From Trichoplax adhaerens (lineage: Eukaryota; Animalia; Placozoa), in the NCBI RefSeq assembly GCF_000150275.1, contig NW_002060945.1, positions 1,003,872 to 1,067,871 on the forward strand: 64,000 bases of DNA, in the 5' to 3' direction. This document shows, piece by piece, positions 54,127 through 64,000 of this stretch (the stretch's first letter is position 1; the number at the start of each line of letters is the position of its first letter). The notes beneath the pieces are model-generated. The model was given only the letters and a program-made list of their open reading frames with translations, had not been told where the DNA came from and ran no database searches. The translations under genes and the position numbers were made by a program.

Positions 54127-54689
54127 TTCCGTATTTTCGATTCGATAGGCTTATTTAACGAAATTAAGAACGAATCAATCAATCTTCCGATGTTACCTTC
54201 AATTTCAGATCAAGATATCAAAGAAACCAGCACAGTATTTACTCGATTGACTTAAGACTAAGCAACGATGGTAATATCATGTCATGGGATCAGTATATAT
54301 CGATCGGGGGAATTATCCAGATTTTTATTTACAAAATGCTGTCTCTAATGGAGGAAAAAACTGCTTCCTACTGCCACTTTGATGCTTGCTCAGCTACTAC
54401 GTTTGGTGCTAGGTGCTACTATACCGATACAGTACTCTCCAGTCATATCAACTTCTAGCAATAAACAGCGAAAAGGGTTCCTGTATCACTTTCTTGTAAC
54501 AGCAAGACCGCGAATTTTTGAAAATCACGTGATCGGCACCGGGTGGATGGGCGGACAGCCTCATCTCGTCCTAGTTCGGTTGCAAACACTTGGATTCATT
54601 ATGAGGTCAGTATGGGAAATGCTCGTCTCCGAATTTGACTTCCTTTTCTAAAGAAATACTATACGAAATCTCTTCCATTTTATTACTCT

Positions 54690-55540
54690 TTAGCTCCCAA
54701 GCTATACAGTACTACAGCCATTATGTAGTGATAGTCCAGAAATCGACTAAAAAGGTCGCAAAAGTAACAACAAACTTAAATAGATATTGCGTCTTGAGTC
54801 ATCGTACAACCATTTATAGCTCACAGCTGGTCGGATGTACAGTACTATACTACAGCAATGATGCAGTGATAGTCCAGAAATCGACTAAAAAAGGTCGCAA
54901 AAGTAGAAGAAACTTAAATAGATATTGCGTCTTGAGTCATCGTACAACCATTTATAGCTCACAGCTGGTCGGATGTACAGTACTATACTACAGCAATGAT
55001 GCAGTGATAGTCCAGAAATCGACTAAAAAAGGTCGCAAAAGTACAACAAACTTACATAGATATTGCGTCTTGAGTCATCGTACAACCATTTATAGCTCAC
55101 AGCTGGTCGGATGTACAGTACTATACTACAACTATTATGCAGTGATAGTCCAGAAATCGACTAAAAAAGGTCGCAAAAGTAGAAGAAACTTAAATAGATA
55201 TTGCGTCTTGAGTCATCGTACAACCATTTATAGCTCACAGCTGGTCGGATGTACATGTACTATACTACAGCTATTATGCAGCGATAGTCCAGAAATCGAC
55301 TAAAAAAGGTCGCAAAAGTACAACAAACTTAAATAGATATTGCGTCTTGAGTCATCGTACTACCATTTATAGCTCACAGCTGGTCGGATGTACAGTACTA
55401 TACTACAACTATTATGCAGTGATAGTCCAGAAATCGACTAAAAAAGGTCGCAAAAGTAGAAGAAACTTAAATAGATATTGCGTCTTGAGTCATCGTACTA
55501 CCATTTATAGCTCACAGCTGGTTGGATGTATAGTACTGTT
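54690..55540. repeat. 138-bp minisatellite, 6 copies plus a partial, with alternating (dimeric) variants
   Basis: Unit starts at 54728, 54866, 55004, 55142, 55281 and 55419. Confidence 0.97.
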
Positions 55541-57381
55541 ATTCCTTACAATTGGTTATATTGCGGTATTATACTGTAAGGTGATACCACCACGTGACTA
55601 CCTTATAGACTTGTTATTACCATGGATACCATACCGTAGCAGCTAATTCTGATGTCAATCGTAGACAATATACAGTAGTATACAAGTCTAGTTGCAGATA
55701 TGCGATGCAGCTGAAATCAACCGGTAAAATAATCGGCCTGCACATTTTTAGTATAGTGAACGACCGCTTTCCATAAAATTTTTAGGCTTTGCAAATGTAT
55801 ATTTTACCCAAAGATAGCTGACTGTAGCAGATAGTTAACAGGTAGTGTACAGGAGAGACTACTTAGCACTTTCTAACACTATAACAAAACAACACGAAAA
55901 CATTCGCCATTGACCTAAATAATGTGACAGTAGTTATCGCAAAATAGTTTAACTGTCGAGAATCTCCTTCATGTTCACATTAACCTTAATTCAATAGAGT
56001 CGCACCTTAATTAAAGGACTGTCAATAAATGTTGTCATAGCCATGGCTAATATAGTATTATAGAAGGAAATGTTGGCTTTTCCGTCAGTCCAATTATTGC
56101 TCAAGCAGAGATTAATATCTTGTGATTTTAAACTTAGGGTAGTATCTTAACTACGAGAAAGATGTAAACCAGAGTCCTCCAATGGAGCGAAAACGCAATT
56201 CGAACCCGATCAAATTGGTCATTTTCTAACCCGAAATGAGTACAATCGCGATAAAAACACTGTATCACCACAGAGATTCTTAACCCGAATCCCGCCCTCG
56301 AGTCAGGTTCAAGTCGGGTTTCGGATTGACTTTGCAGGATACTGATGTGAATCTTTCAAATGAAAGCATGATCTACAATATGGGATGATGTTGATGGCTC
56401 TTATCCTTCTAAGCTACCTCACATAATCGAGACTGTTGCATTTTTTTTTTTCAATGCCATCACTCAATCTGCAACTTACTATATCAATTCAATATTGTCA
56501 GGAAAAATAAGTACTAAAAAGAAAACAGTCCTTTGATTCCGTGAATGACAGCTATAGACTCCCTCTACAACAACAATATAGTACGGTAGTTATCCCATGC
56601 TTCAGGGCTAGCATTGGGCTGCGCTGTTTACTTGCATGGCCTGATAGAATCGTTGGAGAAATGCCTTTTCCTTATGAACGCTACGTAGCATAAGTACAAA
56701 CTTGGGAGTTTCTACTATCTACTTTCGATACTATTGTTGGTAAATCAACCAACAAATGATGCAGTTCCGTAAACAACTCGAGATTATTCTAAGGTGGACT
56801 TTAAATCTTCAACACGTTGTGTATGTAACATGCATTATGCAGCGGACTCAAATTGAAGAACTGATATAGCAGTTCAACTACATGATCGGTATGAAAACTT
56901 CCTAGGAAGAAAAAAAGGGGTGCTACCCATGATGTTCGCATGGCAGGTGTGGTAAATGCTAACCAAATCAAATAATTTACTACTATATTCAGTACTGTAC
57001 AACATAAGAGTTTGATCTTTATAACATCGTATCAGGCCTCCATGTCCACTCCACCCTCTTAGTATCAATTGCTGTATTTCAATTCTAAACTCTATTCCTG
57101 GACTACAATCCTATCCATTCGTTAAATAAATAAATAATTCGGAAACGGCGTTCTATTTCTAAGTATTCAATCATAAATTGTATTCGATACATATACTCGC
57201 ACATATAATAATCTTCGACGTAGAATAAAATACTTAAATTGAAATACGCGTAAAAGAAATCGTACTGTGGAAAAACGAAGCGTAACTTTCCAAACTGGAT
57301 TGTTATATTCAGTACTGTGGTATACGTAACAACTTATAAGTATCAAATTATTCCATCCTTAAAAAAAAGCTGGTCACGAAA

Positions 57382-60300
57382 TTGGAAAATCGATTAAAAA
57401 GGGATCTAGTTATGTCAAACGCCTCATATGTCGATAAGGATGTCAATCTAAACTACCTTTATGATGAGGTACATATTTTACAAGTCTGGCAGAGCTATAT
57501 TTTACGGGAACTGCAACAGGTGCGATTTTACGTTGGTCACACAGTTGATGGCACTTCACAAGATGGTACCTTGTCGCATTTATTGGATAACATGTCTCTA
57601 TCTGGAAGAAGCGGTGCGTTATTAGTCACTAGCGATGGTCAATTATATCAATGTGCTGATTATTCTATTTCTATCTGCGGCGCTGTGAACTACGAAAGTA
57701 ACATACAAGGCGGGTATGATGCAGTCACAAGCAATTTAGAAACCGTATTCAAACAAATAATAGAATGGAATAATTTGAATCCAAGTGCTTCCATCATCTC
57801 ACAAAAAATAATTTTTCCCCTTCAAACGCATTATAACCATTGGACCTTAGGTTGTCTCATACTAAACTTTTCAGGCCAATCTTTGCTCAATAAAGCTGAG
57901 ATAAGCGTTTATGATCCATTTGGTGAAGGTAGTATCCGCGATTCGGTAAAGGTTAAAATAGAAAATCTACTGAAAGAGGTCTTTAACTCCTCAAATGTTC
58001 AACTCGATATGAAGGATAATTCAGATCATATCAGACAACAATATGACGGTACCTCTTGTGGCGCTATTACTGCAGAGAATGGTAAAGACTTGTTGAACGG
58101 CGGTAATGAACGATTACAAAAGCAATACTGCAATCATACATCGAGCAATGATCTTCGCTTGCGACATTTGAAAGACGTCAGTACTCCTCAATTTGCTCAA
58201 AGGCAATGGCAAGCACAATATAGTGATATAAAAGGCGATAAAGAAATCCAAAACAAAGAACAAGTCAAGAAATCTTTGATAAAATGGATTCAAAATCTAC
58301 AGGTCGAAGATAAATATCAAGTAAAGATGTCATTCAGAGCTTTATACAACATTAGTAAAGAAATGATGAAAGATAAAGGAGAAAACCTGTTTAAAAGATT
58401 AGCTGTCTTACGGAAGAAAGAAAGGGAGAAACCGAATAAAAAAAATCAAAAAGAGTCAGGAAATGGCGAGACGAAAACACTAAATCAATCAGGTTTAACT
58501 ACCGCAGAAATAAACGAGATAGAAAAATACCTTCCCATACCATTCGGTAATCCGGGCCAACTTGATGCTTTATCTCAAACTGGTGTAGACCCTGCCAGAT
58601 TGATATTGACCAATTTAAAAAAGTTTTTTAATAATCATAAAGAATCACTAGTTCAAGCTAATATTTATAGTTCAATTCTGGACGGCGCCAATCAATGGCA
58701 AGAAGGTAGCAGAAAATTTCTTGAGGATTTCTCCAAAACGTACGAAAATTACAAAAACGCAGGTGTTGCATCCGCCAAAGGAACTGACCATCAAACCAGA
58801 CAATTAAAATTAAAACTATTCTCTTTCCCATCGCTAAATTCACTATTTCAGGATTGTGGCTGCTCTAATGCAAGCTGTATTCAAATAGAAAATGATATCA
58901 CTACGATAAAGTCAGATGATGAAACTGCGATTAATCTTCTACGCAAACAGATTATTCTTGAACTAGAAGACGACATAGCCGGTCTTGGACAATTGGTTTA
59001 CACCGATAGTGATTATCAAACTGGTCTTAAAGAACTGTTAGATGGGAAAATCATTGCACAAGCCCAAATGTTCTCTCTAATCTTGAGTCGAAAAGTGACA
59101 GACTTGCTCGTTAAGAGTATCGATATATATTACCAAAGACAAATTGGAACAAAACTACATCCCCCTTCACAAACAGGGCAAGCTGGGGCACACTTAGAAG
59201 AAAACGCGCAAGCCTACTTTTTAGCATTCATGATTACCGGCACTGTAGATCCTATTTTAGAACGAGATGATTATGACAGTTTAACACTGCAGGCCGCCCC
59301 CCAAGGCTTTAATACAGATGATTTTGTTGTTACTTTTGGAAAAGAAAGTGAAGGAAATAGATCCCGTCTCCTATGCCAAGTTAAACGTTCCTTAAAGAAT
59401 GGTCTTGGGAAAGCAATCAGCCAGGCTTGGGAGGATTTTGACAAGCCAAAAAAATTTAACCCCAAAAGAGACTATATTGTATTTGTGACCGAAACGCACT
59501 CAGGATTAGATCATCTAAAACAAATGATAAGCAGCGCTCATTCATCGAGCGACGATGTAAATCACTTTCGCAATAGCATTTTTGGAGAAGTCGAGAAAGC
59601 ATATAGTAATATTCATGACATTATCTTAGAAGAGGCATGCATAGATAGGCATGACGGTCAGATTAATCAAAAAGTGTTCAATTTCTTACTAAGAGTAAAA
59701 ATTTTAGAATTTACCCAAGGTCATATAAGTAATATCAAAACTATAATAGGCAATTACAAAAATTGCAATACAGATGAAGCCCTAAAAACGTGGAACTCAC
59801 TGTGTAAAGAAGTCGCCAAAGATAACGAAAGGGCTGGAATAATCACTCGCGAGCCCTTACCGGAACGCTATGAAAAACTCTTCGCTAAAATACAAAACGA
59901 CCCTATATCAGACATAGATTTATTTGGAGAAGAAAACTTTCCACCAGTAGATGATTATTTTACCGGCAGACAAAAGGACTTAATAAAAATGAAAGAGAAG
60001 CTATTCTCTCCAGATCCTAAAAAAAAGGAAGAAGAGAAAAAATTGCTCACCCTTCTAGGTTTAGGTGGAGTCGGAAAAACTTATTTAGCGCTGAAATTTC
60101 TTCATAACGCCAAAGACCACCACGAAAGCATAAAATGTAGACTATTTTTTAACGCCGACGATGAGGAAACTTTAACCAATTCATACATTGAATTGGCTCG
60201 TCATCTAAATATTCTATCAGGAAAGTTGCAAATAGTAAGTCAAATCAGGAAAGTCAAAGGATGGCTTTGTAATAATACAGGCTGGATCATTTTATTCGAT

Positions 60301-62151
60301 AATGCAACAATGAAATATAAAGACCTCATTAAATACATACCTCAAAAGGGAGGGTATATTGTTATCACAACACGCTGCGATAGCTTTGATGTCAACAAAA
60401 TCCAAATTGATATAATGACAATAGAGGATTCCATCGAACTACTGGAGAAGGAAATAGGAGATTTCGAAAATGTCCTTGAAATGAATAAAGATGAACTCAA
60501 TGAACTAGTTCAATTACTTGACTGTTTACCTTTAGCACTTGTTCAAGCAGCAGGCTATATTAAATTTAAATACATGAAAATCAGAGCATATATCAACTTA
60601 TATAAAGAGAACTATGAGAAGCGAAAAGAAATGCTGGAATTTAATACCCCGGAACGCCCTAATCAACATATCCCAGTTTATCTCACTTGGGATATGAGTT
60701 TCAATGTAATTAAAAACACAGACTATGCTGAAAATATTATAACACTGTGTGCCTATCTGTCACCTAATGGTATCCACGAATCACTCTTGCTTCCTCTAAC
60801 AGAGGGAAATCACAAAGCTCTAGATGAAGTATTAAAGACTCTATTCAGTCTATCATTGGTTAAAAGAATAGGATATGAAGTAATTAGCATTCACAAAGTT
60901 TTACAAGAGGTGATTCAAGTCAAACAAAGGCAAGACGAAAAACATAAGCAATGGATCGAGAAAGCAATAGATATTCTTGCCGAGAAATTCAAATGGGACA
61001 GAAACAAAAAGGACTCTATCGATTTAGCTAAAAGTTTAATTGTCCACATTACATGCGCCTTAGATCTGGCCAAAGAAGCTAATCTTAATTCTAATAAAAT
61101 AACGTTTTTATTACATAGAATTGGTGTCTACTATTTGGATATCGAAAGCCTAAACTCACTGGCTGAGGGCTATTTAAGGCGTTCGTTAGAGGGAAATACT
61201 GGCGACAGCGATATTAGGAAAAGAACATATCGACAACTATTTAAGTGTCTAATTCGTGCAGAAAATTATACTGAAGCAAAAGAAATACTTGAAATAATTT
61301 TACCGGCAGACGAAAAAAATTATTCAATAGATGATCACTGCAATTTGGCTCTCTTATTAATGAATTCCAAAGGCGTACTAGTTGTCAAAGCTATCATTGG
61401 ATACTTCACTTTATCGCCATCAAGGCATGGATCAGTCGAGATCTATTCGGGACAGAAAAAGCGAGAACATTTAAAGGAAGCGCAAAAGCAACTAGGCGAG
61501 GCACGAAAAAAGATTGAAGAAAATAACAGTCATCAAAATGGGGCGGTACATGCCAAGGTACTTCATTACTCAGGCCTCTGTTTATATAAACAGAAGCAGT
61601 ATAATGAAGCAAAAAGTTTTTTTGACAATTCCTTGAAACTAAAACGCGATTATTACAATGAAGATCACTTTGAAATTGCTCGAACCCATCATGAAATTGG
61701 GCGTTGTTACTATATACAAAAGCAGTATGAAAACTCTATAAAAGAATTCGACGAAGCTCTTAGAATCAGGCGAAAATATTATAATAGTACGCAAACATTA
61801 TCCACTTTAATTTATTTAGCTAAGTCATATAAGAACACCGGTGAAGTAGAAAAGCGTAAACTGGCAATAACGCTATTAGAGGAAGGACTCAAAATTCAAG
61901 AGAGATTAAAGCTTTCGCTAGATATTACATTGATATTGCTTGCAAAAATTTCTCTTGATTTAAATAGAAGAGAGGATTGTATCCGTTACATTGAAAGAAT
62001 AAGCAATAAAAGTAAATTATCTAGGGAACTCAAGTCCGTTGGCGAAACCGACGTTATTAATTTTTCTAAACAAGAACCCAAACTCTCAACTGAAGAAGCC
62101 TTAACTGACAACTCCGAAAACACGGACAGTGTAGAAATATCCGATGATTAA
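57382..62151 (+). CDS. Intronless multidomain STAND protein: CE-clan/Ulp1-like protease + PD-(D/E)xK nuclease-like domain + NB-ARC NTPase + TPR repeats (first ATG at 57412)
   Basis: HWTL (H153), YDP (D178), QQYDGTSCG (Q220/C226); TDD...LLCQVK (aa 645-668); FTGR, Walker A GLGGVGKT (893-900), Walker B WIILFDNA, IVITTR, LPLALVQAAGYI, IHKVLQ; C-terminal kinesin-light-chain-type TPRs. Confidence 0.88.
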   Translation: MENRLKRDLVMSNASYVDKDVNLNYLYDEVHILQVWQSYILRELQQVRFYVGHTVDGTSQDGTLSHLLDNMSLSGRSGALLVTSDGQLYQCADYSISICGAVNYESNIQGGYDAVTSNLETVFKQIIEWNNLNPSASIISQKIIFPLQTHYNHWTLGCLILNFSGQSLLNKAEISVYDPFGEGSIRDSVKVKIENLLKEVFNSSNVQLDMKDNSDHIRQQYDGTSCGAITAENGKDLLNGGNERLQKQYCNHTSSNDLRLRHLKDVSTPQFAQRQWQAQYSDIKGDKEIQNKEQVKKSLIKWIQNLQVEDKYQVKMSFRALYNISKEMMKDKGENLFKRLAVLRKKEREKPNKKNQKESGNGETKTLNQSGLTTAEINEIEKYLPIPFGNPGQLDALSQTGVDPARLILTNLKKFFNNHKESLVQANIYSSILDGANQWQEGSRKFLEDFSKTYENYKNAGVASAKGTDHQTRQLKLKLFSFPSLNSLFQDCGCSNASCIQIENDITTIKSDDETAINLLRKQIILELEDDIAGLGQLVYTDSDYQTGLKELLDGKIIAQAQMFSLILSRKVTDLLVKSIDIYYQRQIGTKLHPPSQTGQAGAHLEENAQAYFLAFMITGTVDPILERDDYDSLTLQAAPQGFNTDDFVVTFGKESEGNRSRLLCQVKRSLKNGLGKAISQAWEDFDKPKKFNPKRDYIVFVTETHSGLDHLKQMISSAHSSSDDVNHFRNSIFGEVEKAYSNIHDIILEEACIDRHDGQINQKVFNFLLRVKILEFTQGHISNIKTIIGNYKNCNTDEALKTWNSLCKEVAKDNERAGIITREPLPERYEKLFAKIQNDPISDIDLFGEENFPPVDDYFTGRQKDLIKMKEKLFSPDPKKKEEEKKLLTLLGLGGVGKTYLALKFLHNAKDHHESIKCRLFFNADDEETLTNSYIELARHLNILSGKLQIVSQIRKVKGWLCNNTGWIILFDNATMKYKDLIKYIPQKGGYIVITTRCDSFDVNKIQIDIMTIEDSIELLEKEIGDFENVLEMNKDELNELVQLLDCLPLALVQAAGYIKFKYMKIRAYINLYKENYEKRKEMLEFNTPERPNQHIPVYLTWDMSFNVIKNTDYAENIITLCAYLSPNGIHESLLLPLTEGNHKALDEVLKTLFSLSLVKRIGYEVISIHKVLQEVIQVKQRQDEKHKQWIEKAIDILAEKFKWDRNKKDSIDLAKSLIVHITCALDLAKEANLNSNKITFLLHRIGVYYLDIESLNSLAEGYLRRSLEGNTGDSDIRKRTYRQLFKCLIRAENYTEAKEILEIILPADEKNYSIDDHCNLALLLMNSKGVLVVKAIIGYFTLSPSRHGSVEIYSGQKKREHLKEAQKQLGEARKKIEENNSHQNGAVHAKVLHYSGLCLYKQKQYNEAKSFFDNSLKLKRDYYNEDHFEIARTHHEIGRCYYIQKQYENSIKEFDEALRIRRKYYNSTQTLSTLIYLAKSYKNTGEVEKRKLAITLLEEGLKIQERLKLSLDITLILLAKISLDLNRREDCIRYIERISNKSKLSRELKSVGETDVINFSKQEPKLSTEEALTDNSENTDSVEISDD

Positions 62152-64000
62152 CGTATTTAGACGCGATCATCTGCATACCCTGGAAAAAAATATTACAAAA
62201 AGACCTTCAATTTCACTCCATCCAATAAAATAACAGACGCAGTCGTTGCCATAATTTCTCAATGATCAACTAATTTACGTAATTTAAAATAGAACCTTAG
62301 TCTGAAAAGATGACGCGCTACAACCTATTAATAGGTACACTTAATTTAAATCAAGCTAGCACCGTAAGGAAATTTTTTCACTATCCTATCTGAAGACTAG
62401 CATGGCAAGTTTAGAATAAGAATATAGAACAGAAAAAAAGTGATACAACACTAACCCATCACTATTCAGATATTTCGGACAATTTTTCTCCTACACTTAT
62501 TTTACATTTGATCGTTATCATTACAATAAGCATATTCCGACGGTATAGTTTGTAATTGGTTCTATGACAAGAATTTGTGATCTATATCTTTTCGGTTCCC
62601 AACGCTATACAAGTCGATGACTACAATTTATATATATAGACTGTCGTACTATCATACTATGCTATCCTTTACAAGCACTATTGCAACTACTGGTAAATAC
62701 ATAACACTTAAGATTTTCTTCTTTTAGTCAAGTTTACAATACTTTAAATAAACTGAAAATGAATAGACAAGTAAATGAAATAATGATGTCAGTTCTAGAA
62801 TATACTTGTATGTTTTTTCTCGGTGTCGTTGTCACACTATTAAGCTATGTGTATCAACTGTTATTAGTGATCACGCAATATTTGATCAAGTAATCATTCC
62901 AAAGAAACGTTTGGGTGCATATCAAGCCCGGTCGTAGAGAGATTTAGCATCTTTAGCTTTTGCTTGTACAAGACAAGAGTTAATTATATCTTCGATCTAC
63001 ATAAGATGCGAGCTCCAAAATCCAGCGTTCTAGGACTATCAGTAGCGAAACATATAAACCGGTGCTAAGTGGAAGAACCTTTTATTTTATTATTCTTTAA
63101 AAGAAATGATCTCATATTTAATCATATTATTATCATCACTTATAAAAATGTAGTGAATAGGCTTGTCATAGAACTATAAGATAGTTATCACTAGATAACT
63201 TATCTTAAAATTTGCTGATAGCAATTTTATCTACGATTTTATTCATCAGTAATGTTAGCTTGGTGTTTTGTAGCTAAACTATAAATTCGTTGATATTTCA
63301 ATAAATTTGGATCTTATAGTTTAATCTGATTAGAGACATATGTCAACCATGAGTATATCTTCTGAGATAGGGATAATCAGCACAGTATTTAGAGTAGCAT
63401 AGAGACAGATGCCAGGAAGTGTACAATAGGTGCAGATTTGTTATTTTGATATCGTTGCAAACTTCAATTTGTAACAGGGCCATATTGGTTTAATGCCTAA
63501 CAGATATTGGATTGATTAAGTGAGTGAAATAGCTGTCGTAGCAAATTTAATGATAAAGGCAGGCTAATTGGATAAAATTGAAATATTTCACAACCGCGCT
63601 GGAAAGTATCCCTGCTAACTCCCAGCGGATATCATAGAGTTCTTGCTATCTCGTCCATCAGTTAGCGGCTCCGTAAATTGACCACAGACGCTAACTCAGT
63701 CAAGTCCGGTAATATTATGTGTACAGTAGTCTAGTGCGACGTCTGGAGACAGGGACAAGGATTGCAATATATGGAATAATACCTGAGTTCTTAGAATCAC
63801 AATCAATGGTAACTAGGGCAGTTCTTGTAAATGCAATACTGATAGAACCTTATCCTTCTAAATATTATTGACTTCATTAATAAATGTAATTTAGTATATC
63901 TCATTAGAAGCAAAACGTTCATGTTGATGAATTAATTTATAAATACAATACTGATTTGTCATGGAACACCTTTTCATTTTTTGCTACCATAAAGTTGGAT

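Follow-up and report, generated by a model that had tools for sequence, protein, structure and literature searches.

A Cap4-Like Nuclease as the Probable Effector Head of an NB-ARC–TPR Protein of Likely Bacterial Origin in the Placozoan Trichoplax adhaerens

We analyzed a stretch of 64,000 nucleotides from the placozoan Trichoplax adhaerens (contig NW_002060945.1, positions 1,003,872 to 1,067,871; hereafter the window). It holds four open reading frames (ORFs) of at least 150 codons, as expected of sparse, AT-rich, eukaryote-like sequence. The subject of this report is a single ORF on the plus strand (57382..62151, 1,589 codons). The gene proper, which is intron-free, extends from the first ATG at 57412 to 62151 (1,579 codons and a stop), and an AATAAA sequence is located past its end, at 62224. 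In order, the product (residues are numbered from the start of the ORF) comprises a CE-clan peptidase-like region, a helical linker, a small α/β domain, a Cap4-like nuclease domain, an NB-ARC NTPase of the STAND class, a winged-helix/DUF7779 region, and TPR repeats.

The nuclease domain is the central feature of the protein. It had been proposed in a sequence-only reading, which placed a bacterial defense-type PD-(D/E)xK nuclease at 59155–59890, directly upstream of the NTPase. The peptide strings on which that proposal relied are all present in one frame of the single ORF: SQTGQAGAHLEE at residues 596–607 (59167–59202), NTDDFVV at 644–650, CQVKRS at 665–670, and AWEDF at 682–686. The candidate catalytic residues D646/D647 and Q666-x-K668 had been numbered correctly, and the domain is indeed followed by the Walker A motif of the NTPase (GLGGVGKT, residues 893–900, 60058–60081). 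We built a hidden Markov model (HMM) from 13 bacterial homologs alone, and it matched residues 594–835 of the ORF with a score of 118 bits (E = 2e-38), the alignment (59161–59886) nearly coinciding with the proposed span. Since a bacterial-only model gave a match of this strength, the homology is real and far beyond chance.

This homology is not captured by existing models. The Pfam scan returned nothing over residues ~590–850, matches of the nuclease stretch to NCBIfam and PADLOC were at chance level only, and searches of Protein Data Bank (PDB) chains with the domain, both by sequence and by profile, gave only noise (E > 0.6). When the window's own domain was the query, a word search retrieved only its ortholog from Trichoplax sp. 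H2 and one further protein, P0002. The corresponding domain of a paralog (see below), when used as the query, retrieved 111 proteins with 28–100% identity and E values down to 1e-100, more than 100 of them from outside Trichoplax; the matches outside the group in which the domain is linked to NB-ARC had 28–41% identity (E = 4e-48 to 7e-22). The bacterial family surfaced only with the paralog query, whose domain has the more canonical sequence. The domain belongs to a specific family that neither Pfam, NCBIfam nor PADLOC models.

We obtained an AlphaFold2 (AF2) model of the domain from a 20-sequence alignment (mean predicted local distance difference test score [pLDDT] 85.8, predicted template modeling score [pTM] 0.80). 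Its elements (helix 21–40, strands 52–57, 69–73 and 82–88, helix 96–107, and strand 119–124 in model numbering; pLDDT mostly above 90) follow the order α1-β1-β2-β3-α2-β4, which is that of the restriction-endonuclease core α-β-β-β-α-β, and lead into a helical lobe. A Foldseek search of the PDB with this model found Cap4 (E = 1.3e-5), the Avs3 protein of Salmonella enterica, SeAvs3 (E = 3.2e-5), LmuA and HamA, so that the restriction-endonuclease-fold match by which the proposal was to be judged was found, all structural matches being PD-(D/E)xK proteins. The alignments to SeAvs3, Cap4 and LmuA span model residues ~20–260 and hence both lobes; as in Cap4 and SeAvs3, the second, helical lobe is packed with the core into a unit of ~240 residues. 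On these grounds we assign residues 587–715 (59140..59526) to the nuclease core, for which homology, fold and motif residues agree, and residues 716–837 (59527..59892) to the helical lobe, which is covered by the structural alignments and, up to residue 835, by the HMM alignment.

The predicted active site is well preserved. We scored conservation over 115 sequences, 11 of them NB-ARC-linked and 104 Avs4-type or other relatives. T598, G599 and G602 (59173–59187), E606 (59197–59199), Q637, D646 and K668 are invariant among the 115. D647 is conserved in 99% and Q666 in 98% of them (D646/D647, 59317–59322; Q666-V-K668, 59377–59385), and W683 and D697 in 98–99%; D685 is a further key residue of the core. 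The window copy retains all of the invariant and near-invariant motif residues. In the model E606 lies on α1, D647 one residue ahead of β2 (69–73), Q666 inside β3 (82–88), which pairs with β2, and K668 just past the end of β3. At the level of topology, then, the modeled positions of E606, D646/D647 and Q666/K668 are the canonical PD-(D/E)xK layout, with acidic residues at β2, a (D/E/Q)xK motif at β3 and a glutamate on α1. To this extent the model agrees with the convergence of acidic and QxK residues by which the proposal was also to be judged.

Two neighboring nuclease types were examined and set aside. The original description of the domain as "Cap4/Mrr-like" holds for Cap4, as the Foldseek match shows, but not for Mrr (Pfam Mrr_cat), which was matched neither in sequence nor as the closest structure. 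A Cif-like nuclease was rejected as well: the nuclease entries of CinB and CidB were found by Foldseek at E values of 0.39–0.45 with a probability of at most 0.08. By sequence the domain is a separate family and by fold a Cap4 member, and we have hardly any doubt that 59140–59892 (residues 587–837) encodes a two-lobed, Cap4-like (DUF4297-type) PD-(D/E)xK nuclease domain.

The sequence-only reading had also linked the domain to the N-terminal nuclease heads of large bacterial STAND (Avs-type) ATPases, and this link is borne out by more than 100 bacterial proteins with the domain at their extreme N-terminus. The relatives outside the NB-ARC-linked group, in which it always has this position, are mostly ~1,180 or ~1,700 residues long. 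Where named, they are annotated as "ATP-binding protein" or "hypothetical" (among others from Aliivibrio, Thalassomonas, Pseudomonas, Paenibacillus, Acidobacteriota and Spirulina); the rest of the 104 are metagenome proteins of the same two architectures. Four of the ~1,700-residue proteins were scanned with PADLOC (P0038, P0069, P0075 and P0100), and all four are Avs4 (E = 1e-172 to 5e-69). The Avs4 match begins only at about residue 275 of these homologs, after the nuclease domain, which is thus an alternative effector head on Avs4. The Avs4-type proteins (for example P0038 of Aliivibrio fischeri, P0057 of Thalassomonas actiniarum, P0069 of Pseudomonas alloputida and P0075 of Paenibacillus rhizosphaerae) belong to the same sequence family as the window domain, share the motifs NPFSTGGGG..FE..VQ, TDD, QVKH and AW.DF, and are 19–26% identical to the window domain and 30–41% identical to the paralog domain. 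They differ in the remainder: PADLOC recognizes an Avs4 NTPase and sensor in them (E = 1e-172) but not in the window protein, and in the domain tree they sit across a branch with 96–98% support from the window sequence. The Avs profile check proposed along with the domain succeeded for the four bacterial relatives scanned but not for the window protein itself, to which PADLOC assigned 0 families; for the paralog it found none of Avs type. The window protein has an NB-ARC NTPase in place of that of Avs4. Another large class of bacterial proteins, made up of P0010, P0083 and some 45 others like them (~1,180 residues), carries the same N-terminal nuclease domain; its remaining ~900 residues had no PADLOC or Pfam match and no obvious P-loop, and it may be an unmodeled defense protein family.

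Downstream of the nuclease domain the protein has the parts of a STAND switch and sensor. The NB-ARC domain (residues 882–1066, 60025..60579) was matched by Pfam PF00931 with 28.0 bits against a cut-off of 23.5 and contains, in addition to Walker A, the Walker B motif ILFDNA (residues 970–975, 60289–60306). The NCBIfam model FxSxx_TPR covers residues 857–1319 (E = 1e-40). A DUF7779-like winged-helix region (60721..60936) falls below the Pfam cut-off (E = 0.0013), the paralog copy being above it. TPR repeats, the presumed sensor arm, occupy 61162..61776 (TPR_19 at residues 1261–1312, TPR_12 at 1391–1465; TPR_12 E = 5e-19, with TPR_2 and TPR_1 also matched), and the Pfam scan found no death-fold, LRR or WD40 domain in the protein. 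The three-part layout of Avs proteins is accordingly present (nuclease 587–837, NB-ARC 882–1066, TPR 1261–1465), with an extra N-terminal region of ~590 residues and in an animal rather than a prokaryotic host.

This N-terminal region probably includes, within its first ~330 residues, a CE-clan (Ulp1/SENP-type) cysteine peptidase, with a core at 57748..58161. Pfam Peptidase_C48 matched below threshold (E = 0.0024; 18.2 bits against a cut-off of 20.7). Candidate catalytic residues are a histidine in NHWTLG (57835–57852), an aspartate in YDPFG (57910–57924), and a glutamine and a cysteine in QQYDGTSCG (cysteine motif at 58045–58062), motifs that are invariant in a four-sequence alignment. A model of the N-terminal 576 residues was only moderate (pLDDT 66.6, pTM 0.36), and its Foldseek matches, to RavZ, SENP1, the deubiquitinase (DUB) of CidB, SseL, OtDUB and ChlaDUB2, were weak but consistent (E = 0.016–0.2). 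The small α/β domain ("linker B", residues 470–586, 58789..59139) is confidently folded in the same model (pLDDT mostly 77–91) and had no family match in the Pfam scan.

A six-frame search of the Trichoplax assembly (105.6 Mb, 1,414 contigs) with the nuclease domain revealed one paralog, on another contig (G000:C1390) and with 36% identity. This gene, TRIADDRAFT_61662, encodes 986 residues and opens directly with the nuclease domain (…NPFSTGGGGYQFEQNVQAYF…TDD…QVKH…AWTDF), which is followed by NB-ARC and TPR. The two intron-free genes thus have the nuclease, NB-ARC and TPR core in common, at 36% identity in the nuclease and 29% in the NB-ARC–TPR part, for which the paralog is also the nearest match of the window protein within the genome (E = 2e-54; next match, E = 2e-17). 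Unlike the window protein, the paralog retains the canonical FSTGGGG motif, lacks the CE-peptidase region, and shows 99% identity between its T. adhaerens and H2 copies, as against 88–91% for the window nuclease; it also belongs to a different subclade, where it groups with a Legionellaceae protein.

The window gene belongs to the animal chromosome, for no runs of N separate the ORF from the rest of the window, its GC content (36%) resembles that of its flanks (33–36%), the host contig is several Mb long, and Trichoplax sp. H2, which was sequenced independently, has an ortholog, TrispH2_002505, on a contig of 855 kb, with 91–100% identity depending on the region. Outside the genome, P0002 is an intact ORF with about 50% identity to the window protein, and after H2 and P0002 the best relative is P0114 (1,715 residues), which is colinear over 1,600 residues (peptidase, linker, nuclease, NB-ARC and TPR) at 35% identity. 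P0114 is encoded on JGI metagenome contig Ga0207695_10001398, which is gene-dense and of 38% GC. Its neighbors (a KfrA-type plasmid protein, a tyrosine recombinase, an RNaseIII-ankyrin protein, and IS3 and IS110 transposases) mark the contig as a bacterial mobile element of a kind seen in intracellular bacteria. The RNaseIII-ankyrin neighbor (L004:6058-8277), which lies between the recombinase and the insertion sequences, is a 739-residue protein that joins RNase III to ankyrin repeats, a eukaryote-facing architecture.

In domain trees all NB-ARC-linked copies formed one clade with 96–98% support. Within it the arrangement (P0114,(P0002,(H2,window))) was supported at 100/100, and the paralog grouped with P0008 and its kin. 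P0008 (L006:10001-13153) is encoded in a 1.5-Mb metagenome-assembled genome (MAG) of an "uncultured Legionellaceae bacterium", flanked by the housekeeping genes astB, ubiA, znuABC and mutY; among the 41 genomes of the MAG's GTDB order the nuclease domain occurs in this one only, as P0008. Immediately downstream of the P0008 gene and on the same strand is a gene for a 650-residue trypsin-like protein (L006:13186-15138), which may be a partner gene. Judged by sequence, the closest relatives of the window gene whose source is known come from bacteria. Given that the closest relative outside the Trichoplax clade is the colinear P0114 on a bacterial mobile-element contig, transfer from a bacterium to a placozoan is likely, and a bacterial origin of the gene has in our view a high degree of probability. 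Most likely the placozoan lineage received the whole gene from a bacterium of the intracellular type. The paralog seems to go back to another transfer, two separate transfers being the simplest reading, and a single clade of the four Trichoplax sequences was rejected by the approximately unbiased (AU) test (172 log-likelihood units worse, p-AU 1e-61).

P0008 and its relatives P0005, P0006 and P0009 also carry a motif resembling the PIP box, Qxx(L/I)xxF(F/L), in a short N-terminal extension (QSSLHQFF, QSSLFQFF and QQSISCFL), and P0005 and P0006 have a similar motif close to their C-terminus as well (QRNSILRFL/F); ahead of the Trichoplax paralog we saw none. As P0008 comes from the Legionellaceae MAG, it is conceivable that a bacterial nuclease-STAND protein docks on the clamp, or PCNA.

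The T. adhaerens and H2 orthologs differ at 73 residues, and the differences are unevenly spread. Thirty-four of them fall within residues 481–720 (58822–59541), which make up 15% of the protein and cover the small α/β domain and the nuclease core. Identity between the two species is 87% in the small α/β domain and 88% in the nuclease core, as compared with 99% in NB-ARC and 98% in TPR. None of the 73 differences is at a family-invariant residue.

Taken together, we think it probable that the window gene encodes a STAND protein of likely bacterial origin in which an NB-ARC and TPR switch has a Cap4-like nuclease for its effector head. With somewhat less assurance, and by analogy, we favor a catalytically competent DNase activated by oligomerization. 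The sequence of events (TPR, NB-ARC, nuclease assembly, cleavage) is the one expected from SeAvs3, SeAvs7 and HerA-DUF4297. Ligand binding to the TPR arm would release the NB-ARC switch, the released protein would oligomerize, and the nuclease heads would come together as dimers or tetramers to form an active, Mg-dependent site for cleaving double-stranded DNA, so that the cell in which the sensor is triggered would have its DNA degraded. The Cap4 heads of SeAvs3 and SeAvs7 tetramerize on activation, upon binding of the sensor ligand (PMC13581612), and cleavage of double-stranded DNA by HerA-DUF4297 and SeAvs3 requires nuclease dimerization (PMC11291478). Beyond this we entertain, as an unlikely extension, a placozoan abortive-infection device in which the sensor would detect a virus or an intracellular bacterium, the Cap4-like heads would destroy the DNA of the infected cell, and the rapid change of the nuclease surface would be due to an arms race with inhibitors. 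As a speculation, the nuclease might be licensed through a cut made by the CE-clan peptidase close to the QTG(Q/S)AG junction, a sequence that stands where the family has its free N-terminal STGGGG motif.

Several observations weigh against this overall reading. The Pfam model of the Cap4 nuclease (PF14130, Cap4_nuclease) had no match at E ≤ 10 in the whole protein, in the domain or in 20 family members, and a six-frame search of the Trichoplax genome with it found nothing at the window locus. The near-invariant N-terminal motif of the bacterial proteins, NPFSTGGGG..FE, is degraded to PPSQTGQAG..LE in the window clade, and the nuclease domain of the window protein is internal, not N-terminal as in the bacterial family. 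The nuclease core and the domain preceding it are the fastest-changing parts of the protein, which could reflect relaxed constraint or, alternatively, positive selection. As to origin, the group used in the AU test was named after the first tree had been seen, and the domain tree is unrooted and includes five members (P0002, P0005–7 and P0009) with no known source, leaving the direction of transfer unrooted too.

The rival that survives best, though we judge it somewhat unlikely, is that the gene derives from an effector or toxin which an intracellular bacterium directed at its host, a CE-clan deubiquitinase or deSUMOylase joined to a nuclease much as in the Cif proteins of Wolbachia, rather than from an anti-phage sensor. 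The animal would then hold a captured gene of the toxin type and not an immune receptor; the biochemistry of the nuclease would be unchanged. The N-terminal model matches CE-clan peptidases of intracellular bacteria (RavZ, SseL, ChlaDUB2, OtDUB and CidB), and bacterial peptidases of this clan act mostly on host ubiquitin-like proteins. The RNaseIII-ankyrin neighbor of P0114 on its mobile element and the PIP-box-like motifs of paralog-clade proteins, one of them from the Legionellaceae MAG, point the same way. CE-peptidase and NB-ARC proteins are moreover found in the eukaryotic association module of the WO prophage, with copies in arthropod genomes (PMC6133264), which makes them a partial precedent for this architecture as well as for its passage into animals. 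The assignment of the peptidase is itself weak, however, and the nuclease is Cap4-like rather than Cif-like, CinB and CidB being found at E ~0.4 with a probability below 0.1. The order of domains differs as well: CifB-type toxins have their nuclease domains first and the DUB last, C-terminal to the nucleases, whereas the CE-peptidase-like region of the window protein is N-terminal to the nuclease. Finally, a switch of NB-ARC and TPR is the hallmark of a ligand-gated sensor.

We regard as unlikely, a little more so than a captured toxin, the explanation that the nuclease has become a relic or has no catalytic activity, having arrived with a fairly recent bacterial insertion and now drifting or serving as a scaffold or DNA-binding part. 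It would account for the clustering of differences between T. adhaerens and H2, for the altered glycine-rich N-terminal motif and for substitutions at positions that are 87–98% conserved (F605L, H669R, G704E, R720H, F728H and D778T); the lack of introns fits it too. But most of the motif changes are common to P0114, the protein from the bacterial contig, and hence predate the animal copy. T. adhaerens, H2, P0002 and P0114 all retain the invariant residues that are candidates for catalysis, none of which is touched by the differences between the orthologs, and the 4.7-kb ORF is intact in two species, as well as in P0002 at its much lower identity.

Transfer in the reverse direction, with the nuclease-NB-ARC-TPR family being eukaryotic and captured by intracellular bacteria from their hosts, has some room because of the unrooted tree and the five members of no known source, but we consider it improbable. 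Intracellular bacteria do acquire host genes, the rarity of the domain in the order of the Legionellaceae MAG would be expected of such an acquisition, and some bacterial members have eukaryote-like PIP-box motifs and low-complexity tails. On the other side, the 104 other nuclease relatives include named bacterial proteins and four that PADLOC confirmed as Avs4, NB-ARC and TPR relatives are common in bacteria too, both Trichoplax genes are intron-free, and the protein searches made found no further named eukaryote with the nuclease domain. Contamination, or a chimera assembled from symbiont sequence, is hardly credible and was rejected: bacterial sequence of a rickettsial endosymbiont is reported among the data of the T. 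adhaerens genome project (Driscoll et al. 2013, as cited in PMC6321704) and the ORF has no introns, but against this stand the gap-free window on a contig of several Mb, the GC content of 36% like that of the flanks, and the H2 ortholog on its 855-kb contig.

Comparison with known systems shows where a Cap4-like head on an NB-ARC–TPR protein would stand. The N-terminal Cap4-like nuclease of SeAvs3 (PDB 8DGC) is 14% identical to the window domain, and there was no sequence-level match in the PDB; SeAvs3 also differs in that the NTPase of the window protein is NB-ARC, its host an animal, and its nuclease domain internal, behind about 590 extra residues. Cap4 (the effector of CBASS), LmuA (Lamassu), HamA (Hachiman) and HerA-DUF4297 are regulated by SAVED and cyclic oligonucleotides, by an SMC-like protein, or by a helicase or HerA partner. 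The window nuclease, unlike these, is fused to NB-ARC and is without a match to PF14130. Animal proteins of the NLR/Apaf-1 type combine NB-ARC, for which the window protein has both Walker motifs, with C-terminal repeats in the same way, but they have a death-fold adaptor (CARD, DD or PYD) and an LRR or WD40 sensor where the window protein has a predicted nuclease and TPR. In the catalog of 39 NB-ARC genes of Trichoplax sp. H2 by Kamm et al. (2019), TrispH2_002505 is listed with NB-ARC and TPR and no effector (PMC6321704, Dataset S3D), the effectors listed for other genes being CARD, Death-like or DD (PMC6321704). Our results correct this entry, by which the gene was left without an effector domain, and define a nuclease family missed by the models of Pfam, NCBIfam and PADLOC.

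Among animal STAND proteins, SAMD9 and SAMD9L carry a nuclease effector. Their effector fold and NTPase clade are different ones, and the window gene, in contrast, is directly homologous in sequence to bacterial proteins. SAMD9 and SAMD9L are antiviral factors whose sensor clusters with bacterial Avs5 (PMC13581612, PMC12680541), and PMC12680541 attributes the resemblance to ancient convergence. We found no paper that describes the window gene and none that joins Trichoplax with Cap4; literature searches on Avs, NLRs and nucleases in metazoans returned only the work on bacterial Avs and that on SAMD9 and SAMD9L. Links between bacterial defense and animal immunity (cGAS-STING, TIR, gasdermin and NLR/Avs) are usually framed in terms of ancient inheritance or of common modules. 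In Trichoplax, by sequence comparison, an animal gene appears to encode a complete sensor, switch and nuclease, with a head directly homologous to the heads of bacterial Avs4. If the protein is active, animals can take over and keep enzyme-armed STAND receptors of a bacterial kind. cGAS, STING, RIG-I-like receptors and NLRs of the LRR type are reportedly absent from placozoans (PMC6321704), and these animals may fill part of their intracellular defense with such imports.

Finally, we note two further observations. The Trichoplax assembly contains what appears to be a third gene combining a nuclease with a STAND protein, on the minus strand of contig G000:C1249 (L008, 4456–8500). An ORF of 269 residues has the Cap4-type motifs GIVYQ, FDDLVID and LQAKH and a weak match to PF14130 (E = 0.146); after it comes an ORF of 1,075 residues, in another frame and overlapping by 8 nucleotides, with a NACHT-like P-loop (AKAGCGKTS, LLLDGFDEI). 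An alignment by hhalign of our family profile with the Cap4-type ORF brought together only TDD..QVK and FDD..QAK and was not significant (E = 0.13). The contig is only 9 kb long and contains N gaps, and may be of host or of symbiont origin. In the window itself, a 138-bp tandem repeat (six copies, 95% matches) lies at 54710–55537, 1.9 kb upstream of the gene, and accounts for the repetitive mechanical ORFs at 54635–55646.

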